Shown piece by piece: positions 3,259-13,204 of a stretch of 64,000 bases of DNA. A model generated the notes under the pieces. It was not told where the DNA came from. It did not search any database and saw only the letters and a list, made by a program, of their open reading frames with translations. The stretch lies in sequence record NC_004629.1. One strand, written 5' to 3'. The position numbers and the translations under genes are program-made. Position 1 is the first letter of the stretch. The number at the start of each line of letters is the position of its first letter.

Positions 3259-3333
3259 TTTCTATTTTCCTATTTTGGTAATACTAAGTTAAACAACGAT
3301 ATGATACTTTACTAATCGTCAATGGAGTTTAAT

Positions 3334-12097
<8,764 letters not shown>

Positions 12098-12155: not shown

Positions 12156-12461
12156 ATGTCTCTACTTAAAAAGATCGGTCTAGCTTTAATTGGATCAGAA
12201 GGACGTAAGGAAGTTTTTGAACAAGAATTAACTAAACTATCAAATTCTAATGCAGTTATTGATCAAATGGTGATTAATTTACTGGGTAGTAAGAAGAAGT
12301 TAGATGACTTCCTAATTAAAGCTGAAGAAATTGATAATAAGAAACTAGGCTTCATTAAAAATCGAGCCGAACTTATTAAACTAGTCAAATCTAAATATTC
12401 ACAAGACCCTCGGGTTGCCGATGTAGTAGTGTCACTTTACATTGGTGGTTTCATTTATTGA
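12156..12461 (+). CDS. Hypothetical protein (101 aa)
   Basis: ORF with AGGT RBS; Lys-rich and helical. Confidence 0.7.
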   Translation: MSLLKKIGLALIGSEGRKEVFEQELTKLSNSNAVIDQMVINLLGSKKKLDDFLIKAEEIDNKKLGFIKNRAELIKLVKSKYSQDPRVADVVVSLYIGGFIY

Positions 12462-12468
12462 GGTAAGT

Positions 12469-13161
12469 ATGTCTAAACCTAATCTTGAGTGGTTAGCTTC
12501 CTTAGAAAGTAAAGAAGCTAAGAGTACAGTAGATTCTTCCGATATGGATAATGATCAAAAGGAAGGTAGCGATAAGTCTCAACAAGATGAAGCTACTGAA
12601 CCTGAGAAGAAAATTACTGCAACTGATGTACAAATTGCAATTGAAGAATATGCGCGTATCCGTGCATTAACCACTACTAAAGATCTTCCAACTGACCCTG
12701 AACCAGGTGATACTTATCATGTAAATGGGGTAGATTGGATTTATCAAGAAGATGGTGGATGGGTAACTATGCAAGGTATTTATGGCCATGAACATTTTGA
12801 TGAAAATGGTCTAAATATTGAAGCAAGTGGTATTGATCAGAAATCAGGTGCAACTAAACGTTATGTGGTAACTGGTTATAATGCTCAGACTAACCCAGCT
12901 GCTATGCCTGGTGATAATCTGACTGAATGTGTTATCCTAATGCAGAATGGACTTGTTCCAGAAGTTGGTGTAAATGGCCTAACTGCTGACTGTCTACTTA
13001 AAATCGTTAAAGATTTATTTGAAGGTTATCAAGCAGGCCCATTTGCATGTGAAGAGAATCAGGTAGTGATTAATTCAATGGACCGTGCTCTTAGTGCAAT
13101 TCATCAACGCCTCGTAAGACGTAAAGAACAAGGTACTGAAGGTACCTATAGTGGTAATTGA
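12469..13161 (+). CDS. Tad1-like nucleotide-signal sponge domain fused to an acidic N-terminal extension (230 aa)
   Basis: C-terminal MQNG..EVGVNG..DCLLKIVKDLFEGYQAGPFACEEN...R..RRKEQGTEGT aligns by eye to recalled Tad1 (FQKG..[30 protein letters not shown]...RRVEDRIERNVLGT). GAGGT RBS at 12460 favours a start at 12469. Confidence 0.75.
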   Translation: MSKPNLEWLASLESKEAKSTVDSSDMDNDQKEGSDKSQQDEATEPEKKITATDVQIAIEEYARIRALTTTKDLPTDPEPGDTYHVNGVDWIYQEDGGWVTMQGIYGHEHFDENGLNIEASGIDQKSGATKRYVVTGYNAQTNPAAMPGDNLTECVILMQNGLVPEVGVNGLTADCLLKIVKDLFEGYQAGPFACEENQVVINSMDRALSAIHQRLVRRKEQGTEGTYSGN

Positions 13162-13168
13162 CATAAAT

Positions 13169-13186
13169 GCCTCCCTTCGGGGAGGC
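13169..13186 (+). terminator. Intrinsic terminator (UUCG loop)
   Basis: GCCTCCC-TTCG-GGGAGGC then TTTATTT. Confidence 0.85.
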
Positions 13187-13204
13187 TTTATTTCGTATTA
13201 AAAA

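Follow-up and report, generated by a model that had tools for sequence, protein, structure and literature searches.

The protein gp184 of phiKZ, a jumbo phage of Pseudomonas, is very probably a two-part protein in which a delivery module is followed by a sponge: it would be docked in the head, cut by the protease gp175, injected, and left to sequester immune signals. The N-terminal ~108 residues, which run from a conserved motif through an acidic linker and a short helix to a 35-residue β module, would carry gp184 into the phiKZ prohead, and the protein would be wedged there between gp86 and the centre of the vertex-adjacent hexamer, with five copies per vertex. Cleavage by gp175, most likely after G106-H107-E108, would leave a free 122-residue Tad1 domain in the head. 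At the next infection, this fragment would exit the head with the DNA and the inner-body proteins, and in the new host it would bind Thoeris gcADPR and CBASS cyclic dinucleotides at a dimer-interface pocket formed by Y187, N197, R214, and R218. With the signals sequestered, the immune effectors would stay off.

Earlier papers name gp184 as Tad1, capsid-docked, and injected. Hence, gp184 as an injected Tad1 minor capsid protein is already known in every main respect, virion packaging included. Specifically, its location in the capsid, its processing, its injection, and the assignment of Tad1 as anti-Thoeris and anti-CBASS were demonstrated by others, and the homology, the fold, the conservation of the pocket, and the module boundaries are established here. 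Three observations are added, namely a conserved G-x-E at the module boundary, an anchor-only homologue in Psa21, and N-terminal extensions in 42% of the relatives.

Locus and neighbouring genes

The window is a stretch of 64,000 nucleotides from NC_004629.1, and the coordinates of its features are collected in Table 1. Position 12469 of the window is genome position 198469, and the open reading frame starting there with ATG and ending with TGA is therefore PHIKZ184. The 1.2-kb stretch around it has 100% DNA identity to phiKZ AF399011/NC_004629 (198100–199300), and many phiKZ-like isolates are also 100% identical. RefSeq labels the product merely as 'PHIKZ184, structural protein'. The first-pass annotation, made from the sequence alone, had placed the gene at the end of the tail-protein block, and the neighbours agree: gp184 follows gp181, the tail lysin, and gp182, which is the baseplate spacer ring by cryo-EM (PMC13250141). 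A thymidylate kinase gene lies downstream. As one terminator-like hairpin is found 3′ of gp181 and another just past the gp184 stop codon, gp182, gp183, and gp184 sit between two terminator-like sites.

Several further features were observed in the window. Both hairpins are strong, and the one behind gp184 can also be read on the minus strand. The mechanical open reading frame of gp181 (3322–10047, +) begins with an ATG 12 nt upstream of the annotated start at 3334, and encodes 2241 aa versus 2237 aa. On the minus strand, positions 396–717 match the full length of the Rfam group I intron model RF00028 (92 bits, E 2e-22). This intron lies between PHIKZ178 and PHIKZ180 and overlaps the 3′ end of PHIKZ179. 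PHIKZ178 and PHIKZ180 are both labelled RNA polymerase beta subunit and head protein. It looks as if an intron with an inserted open reading frame interrupts the virion RNA polymerase gene. No tRNA genes were found in the window.

Table 1. Features of the gp184 locus, segments of gp184, and the Psa21 homologue (window coordinates unless another record is named).
Feature	Coordinates	Strand	Basis or remark
gp181, tail-associated lysin	3334-10047	+	upstream of gp182; annotated start
Terminator-like GC hairpin and T run, 3′ of gp181	10055-10082	+	hairpin search
gp182, baseplate spacer protein	10103..12097	+	ORF list, annotation, PMC13250141
gp183, 101 aa, adjoins gp184 upstream	12156..12461	+	ORF list, annotation
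GAGG ribosome-binding site (Shine-Dalgarno), 5 nt 5′ of ATG, overlaps gp183 stop codon	12460..12463	+	sequence reading
PHIKZ184 (gp184) CDS, 230 aa and stop	12469..13161	+	198469-199161 of AF399011/NC_004629; protein is PDB 8y6v chain I
Residues 1-13, conserved motif (L.W...LES) ending in S-L-E protease-type site; candidate head-targeting/propeptide segment	12469..12507	+	alignment, [SAG]xE
Residues 14-50, acidic linker, predicted disordered	12508..12618	+	pLDDT 30-40; ~30% D+E
Residues 51-72, short helical segment before anchor	12619..12684	+	model helix 51-61, low confidence
Residues 73-107, small aromatic β module, capsid anchor; bounds approximate	12685..12789	+	8y6v_I match, strands
G106-H107-E108, candidate gp175 protease site at anchor/Tad1 boundary	12784..12792	+	[SAG]xE, P1 = 108
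Residues 109-230, Tad1 domain: antiparallel β sheet and two long helices	12793..13158	+	model, Foldseek, HMMER
Terminator-like GC hairpin (13169-13186) and T run, 8 nt past gp184 stop	13169..13193	+	hairpin search
Psa21 gp249, anchor-only homologue	NC_062581.1 206787-207062; L004:2357-2632		slot after gp182-like gene

The C-terminal region of gp184 is a Tad1 domain

The first-pass annotation had read a Tad1-like sponge from a set of strings, all of which are present in gp184: QKSGATKRYVV at residues 124–134, MQNGLVPEVGVNG at 158–170, LLKIVKDLF at 176–184, YQAGPFACEEN at 187–197, and R...RRKEQGTEGT at 214–226. That reading was upheld by every type of comparison with solved Tad1 structures, and the protein is named Tad1 in the literature. 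When gp184 was searched against all PDB sequences with phmmer, residues 117–226 matched six distinct Tad1 sequences with E values of 2e-6 to 4e-6. The matched sequences come from Clostridium botulinum and Clostridioides mangenotii prophages, and the Tad1 chains in PDB are 123–125 residues long. A profile of gp184 and 19 relatives searched against PDB gave E values from 3.7e-12 to 7e-11, with 3.7e-12 for CmTad1 and ~5e-11 for CbTad1. In phage genomes, tblastn matched the annotated Tad1 gene of Bacillus phage SBSphiJ7 and the 'anti-thoeris viral protein' of phage Atlee.

Structure prediction led to the same family. Residues 109–230 were modelled as a monomer with a 61-sequence alignment, and the model has a mean pLDDT of 94.6 and a pTM of 0.83. 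It contains three strands followed by two long helices, which span 65–81 and 87–112 in domain numbering. Foldseek against PDB placed Tad1 chains at all ranks from 1 to 20 (TM 0.76–0.77, probability 1.00, E ~1e-7), and the first match below rank 20 has an E value of 0.09. This domain model supersedes a first whole-protein model made with 20 sequences (pLDDT 55.8), to which Tad1 matched with an rmsd of 16. The modelled domain begins at residue 109, and the alignment to CbTad1 begins at residue 117, opposite residue 15–17 of the CbTad1 chain. By sequence, profile, and fold, the C-terminal 122 residues of gp184 are a true Tad1 domain.

Family databases gave a divided outcome on the profile side. 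The profile of the family against PDB reached 3.7e-12 as described above, but local Pfam and NCBIfam scans of whole gp184, its C-terminal part, and four relatives returned no relevant family. PF24729 (Acb2_Tad1_hairpin) was absent from the local hmmscan even at E 10; in the precomputed table it is assigned to 15 of 19 relatives and marked weak. A PHROGs search of gp184 found families of unknown function only. Tad1 is the single anti-defence gene that AntiDefenseFinder detects in phiKZ (PMC11724313).

The precomputed Pfam family of the relatives is shared between Acb2 and Tad1, and would also suit a domain that sequesters cyclic oligonucleotides like Acb2 instead of binding gcADPR like Tad1. 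We regard this identity as extremely improbable. No Acb2 chain was returned by the sequence and fold searches of PDB, in which all significant matches were Tad1, and the Acb2 identity was rejected on this ground. Furthermore, the model of residues 109–230 has the N-terminal β sheet typical of Tad1, and the residues of the Tad1 cA3 site are not conserved.

The dinucleotide pocket is conserved and the trinucleotide site is not

In CbTad1, residues F82, N92, R109, and R113 make up a common pocket for gcADPR and 2′,3′-cGAMP, and R90 and T97 bind cyclic trinucleotides at the threefold interface and support the hexamer (Li et al. 2023 preprint). We mapped these positions onto gp184 by the HMMER alignment to chain 8kbh_I, in which residue numbers run one below the native ones. 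The four pocket residues align to Y187, N197, R214, and R218 of gp184, respectively, and R90 and T97 (R88 and T95 in CmTad1) align to E195 and N202. An exhaustive search at E ≤1e-3 gave 2136 representatives, and the pocket columns were read in 123 of the relatives found. With hardly an exception, the four columns read F/Y, N, R, and R. In the R90 column most relatives have E, D, or A and only nine of the 123 have R, and the T97 column is variable.

As judged from these aligned residues, the gcADPR/cyclic-dinucleotide pocket of gp184 is intact. At the two positions that hold cA3 in CbTad1 and CmTad1, gp184 has E195 and N202, and it is therefore predicted to bind cA3 in the CbTad1 manner weakly or not at all. 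We also infer a hexameric state for the domain. Only some Tad1 proteins possess the cyclic-trinucleotide site, which does not define the family. A shifted ligand specificity had been proposed from the differences KRY versus HEY and DLF versus DRL, both of which are visible in the alignment. The proposal is upheld only in part: the cyclic-trinucleotide site differs (E195 and N202), and the core gcADPR/cyclic-dinucleotide pocket is conserved.

The ligand spectrum of gp184 itself is taken second-hand from citing papers, and Li et al. 2024 (Nature 635:719) is the source that these papers cite for phiKZ Tad1 activity. The 2023 preprint of Li et al. does not mention phiKZ. A review describes CBASS and Thoeris as being blocked by the Tad1 that phiKZ injects (PMC13282480).

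The N-terminal extension contains a capsid anchor

The extension in front of the Tad1 domain exists as the first-pass annotation had claimed, but its length is ~108 residues and not 125. The acidic disordered stretch described there was borne out by residues 14–50, which are predicted to be disordered (no secondary structure and a pLDDT of 30–40 in the model) and have ~30% D+E by direct count. The aromatic module quoted as LPTDPEPGDTYHVNGVDWIYQEDGGW corresponds to residues 73–98. Strands of the β module are predicted at 82–85, 88–92, and 98–100 in the whole-protein model (mean pLDDT 55.8), and the helical segment of residues 51–72 is kept only in the phiKZ-type relatives (P0001–P0004). In the alignment of close relatives, M1 and E13 are almost invariant.

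In 8Y6V, a structure of the phiKZ capsid, gp184 is present as chain I (100% identity over 230 aa). Only 34 residues of this chain are modelled, and they match the gp184 model at 100% identity with a TM of 0.82 and an rmsd of 2.0 (Foldseek). As these 34 residues match the aromatic module and the predicted strands, the small aromatic β module (73–107) is the capsid anchor. [quoted passage not shown] The same paper reports that the head protease gp175 cuts gp184 and that a large part of the protein is unseen in the capsid map, and it allows either removal or mere flexibility of the unseen C-terminal part (PMC11297242).

Such a position would also suit a protein whose main role is to cement the capsid vertex, with a Tad1-like domain that is a relic, or that stays tethered and flexible in the head, and has little role in counter-defence. 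Within the vertex-binding complex, gp184 fills the gap between gp86 and subunit d of the major capsid protein, and flexibility explains the unseen C-terminal part as well as removal does (PMC11297242); Psa21, moreover, retains the anchor alone. We consider such a role improbable nonetheless. The gp184 gene is dispensable at 37 °C in TnSeq, and insertion mutants compete approximately like controls (10.1101/2025.11.23.690004), and the C-terminal tag is detected in translation-blocked infected cells (PMC10449902). Selection on ligand binding is indicated by the pocket residues, which are invariant or F/Y in 123 relatives, and relatives of the phiPA3 type retain Tad1 without the β module. That the protein might be tethered or virion-packaged had been proposed from the sequence, and this is confirmed by its presence as chain I of 8Y6V and by a western blot of injected, C-terminally tagged gp184.

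Proteolytic processing and injection

The gp175 motif S/A/G-X-E was confirmed by Fossati et al. 2023 (PMC10449902). Matches to [SAG]xE in gp184 have P1 at residues 13, 16, 44, 59, and 108, and two further ones (195 and 224) lie within the folded domain. G106-H107-E108 is exactly at the boundary between anchor and Tad1, and a cut after E108 would leave a Tad1 of 122 aa, the size of stand-alone Tad1. G-x-E occurs at this boundary in every relative having both the β module and Tad1, as GHE in P0001 and P0002, GFE in P0003, and GIE in P0004. On the strength of the motif, we treat E108 as a candidate gp175 site for the release. Mapped gp175 cleavage sites, including that of gp184, were reportedly published by Thomas et al. 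2012. The supplements of PMC10449902 contain no peptide-level cleavage data for gp184.

At the other end of the extension, the N-terminal motif ends in S/G-L-E-S and is near-invariant in the close clade. It can be likened to the cut that gp175 makes after E13 of gp93 (E13/S14), and gp184 may be cleaved at E13 as well; residues 1–13 may serve in head targeting or as a propeptide. In the wider family, [SAG]xE is found near the start of the domain in 33 of the 56 extended relatives (59%) versus a background of 0.39. As this enrichment is only mild, the protease model is limited to the close clade.

Injection was addressed by others. gp184 with a C-terminal 3xFLAG is packaged in virions and is detected by western blot in translation-blocked infected cells, which means that it is injected (Fossati et al. 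2023, PMC10449902). The preprint of Chan et al. 2025 names the protein 'Thoeris anti-defense protein 1 (Tad1, gp184)', describes its N-terminus as wedged in the capsid and its C-terminus as freed by the head protease and injected, and counts orf184 (tad1), by TnSeq, as one of the minor capsid genes that are not essential (10.1101/2025.11.23.690004).

Five anchors per vertex correspond to at most ~55–60 copies per virion and hence to about as many pockets, which would be a small buffer. Newly made gp184 may matter as much as the injected dose, and may even account for much of the protection. In an alternative reading, the sponge acts mainly as a full-length or newly made cytoplasmic protein, with packaging and injection as a minor side route. 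The small number of pockets at the anchor sites would favour this, and stand-alone Tad1 proteins of other phages are active without packaging. We rate this option as possible but rather unlikely. It has to be set against the demonstrated injection of gp184 (PMC10449902), against the N-terminal motif with its protease-type site, which is present in 19 of 19 close relatives and points to selection for head delivery, and against the gene's surroundings, which are late structural genes, and its placement between two terminator-like sites. Delivery from the virion with release of the Tad1 domain remains the preferred reading.

Modular architectures among relatives

Three architectures occupy one genomic slot, located after a gp182-like gene. 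The phiKZ type (P0001–P0004; 219–230 aa) is composed of motif, acidic linker, helix, anchor, and Tad1. The phiPA3-like type (P0005–P0019 and phiLBG22; 190–207 aa) has the motif, the acidic linker, and Tad1 without the β module. The third type is that of Pseudomonas phage Psa21, in which gp249 (YP_010347798.1) has 91 aa and matches residues 64–107 of gp184 with 41% identity (E 3e-12). Its last residue aligns with H107, exactly at the point where a Tad1 domain would be expected to start, and tblastn detected no Tad1 domain elsewhere in the Psa21 genome.

Tad1 homologues of 193–202 aa that lack the β anchor were also observed in phiLBG22 (OU343167.1; L005:2273-2854) and in a metagenomic phiKZ-like contig (L002:8001-8609). 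Both retain the L.W...LES motif and the acidic linker, and both are syntenic with gp184, having the giant SLT-domain protein and a 660-aa protein upstream and the thymidylate kinase downstream.

The extension of gp184 had been called unusual, and this description did not survive the comparison. Among the 133 relatives that cover most of the Tad1 domain, 56 (42%) have at least 60 residues before it, and seven have at least 200. In some relatives of 440–484 aa (P0072, P0086, P0142, P0156, and others), the Tad1 domain forms the very C-terminal end and is preceded by more than 320 residues, and these proteins may be other fusions of a cargo to a carrier.

Taken jointly, these architectures would fit a broader reading, which we put forward tentatively and rate as doubtful in its entirety: that the slot is a modular cassette for head delivery, that packaging of sponges is common and overlooked, and that the clade gave up cyclic-trinucleotide binding. 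In some lineages, Tad1 would have been attached as cargo behind a targeting motif at the N-terminus, which may or may not be accompanied by a β-hairpin capsid anchor. In this view, phiKZ would have anchor and Tad1, the phiPA3 type would have motif, acidic linker, and Tad1, and Psa21 would be free of cargo. Extensions of 60 to more than 350 residues on 42% of the Tad1 relatives could then reflect virion packaging of sponges.

Comparison with known systems

A sponge carried in the virion is present before any phage gene is read, and answers the timing problem of counter-defence. For phiKZ gp184 this argument is already in print. What the present analysis leaves to build on are the module boundaries, the anchor-only relative in Psa21, and the frequency of extensions on Tad1, which could guide a survey for packaged sponges.

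An anti-defence protein that acts before any phage gene expression is known from phage T4. IPI* is small, is targeted to the prohead by its N-terminal part, is trimmed by the prohead protease, and is injected with the DNA. Neither its sequence nor its target is related to that of gp184. IPI* blocks a restriction enzyme by binding to it and sequesters no signal, and inside the head it is present free, with no attachment to the shell.

Within phiKZ, the inner-body and minor capsid proteins gp93 and gp162 are described in the literature as following the same route as gp184: their N-terminal part is bound on the inner capsid surface, and their C-terminal part is released by the gp175 cut at S/A/G-x-E and injected. 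The cargo differs, being helix-rich inner-body domains in gp93 and gp162 and a nucleotide sponge in gp184. So does the anchor, which consists of extended S-shaped arms in the former two and of a β module in the latter.

Compared with solved Tad1 proteins, the domain of gp184 shares the fold of a β sheet and two long helices with CbTad1 (7UAV/7UAW/8SMD/8KBE-H), CmTad1 (8KBB-D), and SBSphiJ7 Tad1, while the identity is only 24–28%. In the loops of the β sheet, gp184 has KRY in place of HEY, and its 138–152 loop is longer. Unlike these Tad1 proteins, gp184 carries the N-terminal delivery module of ~108 residues.
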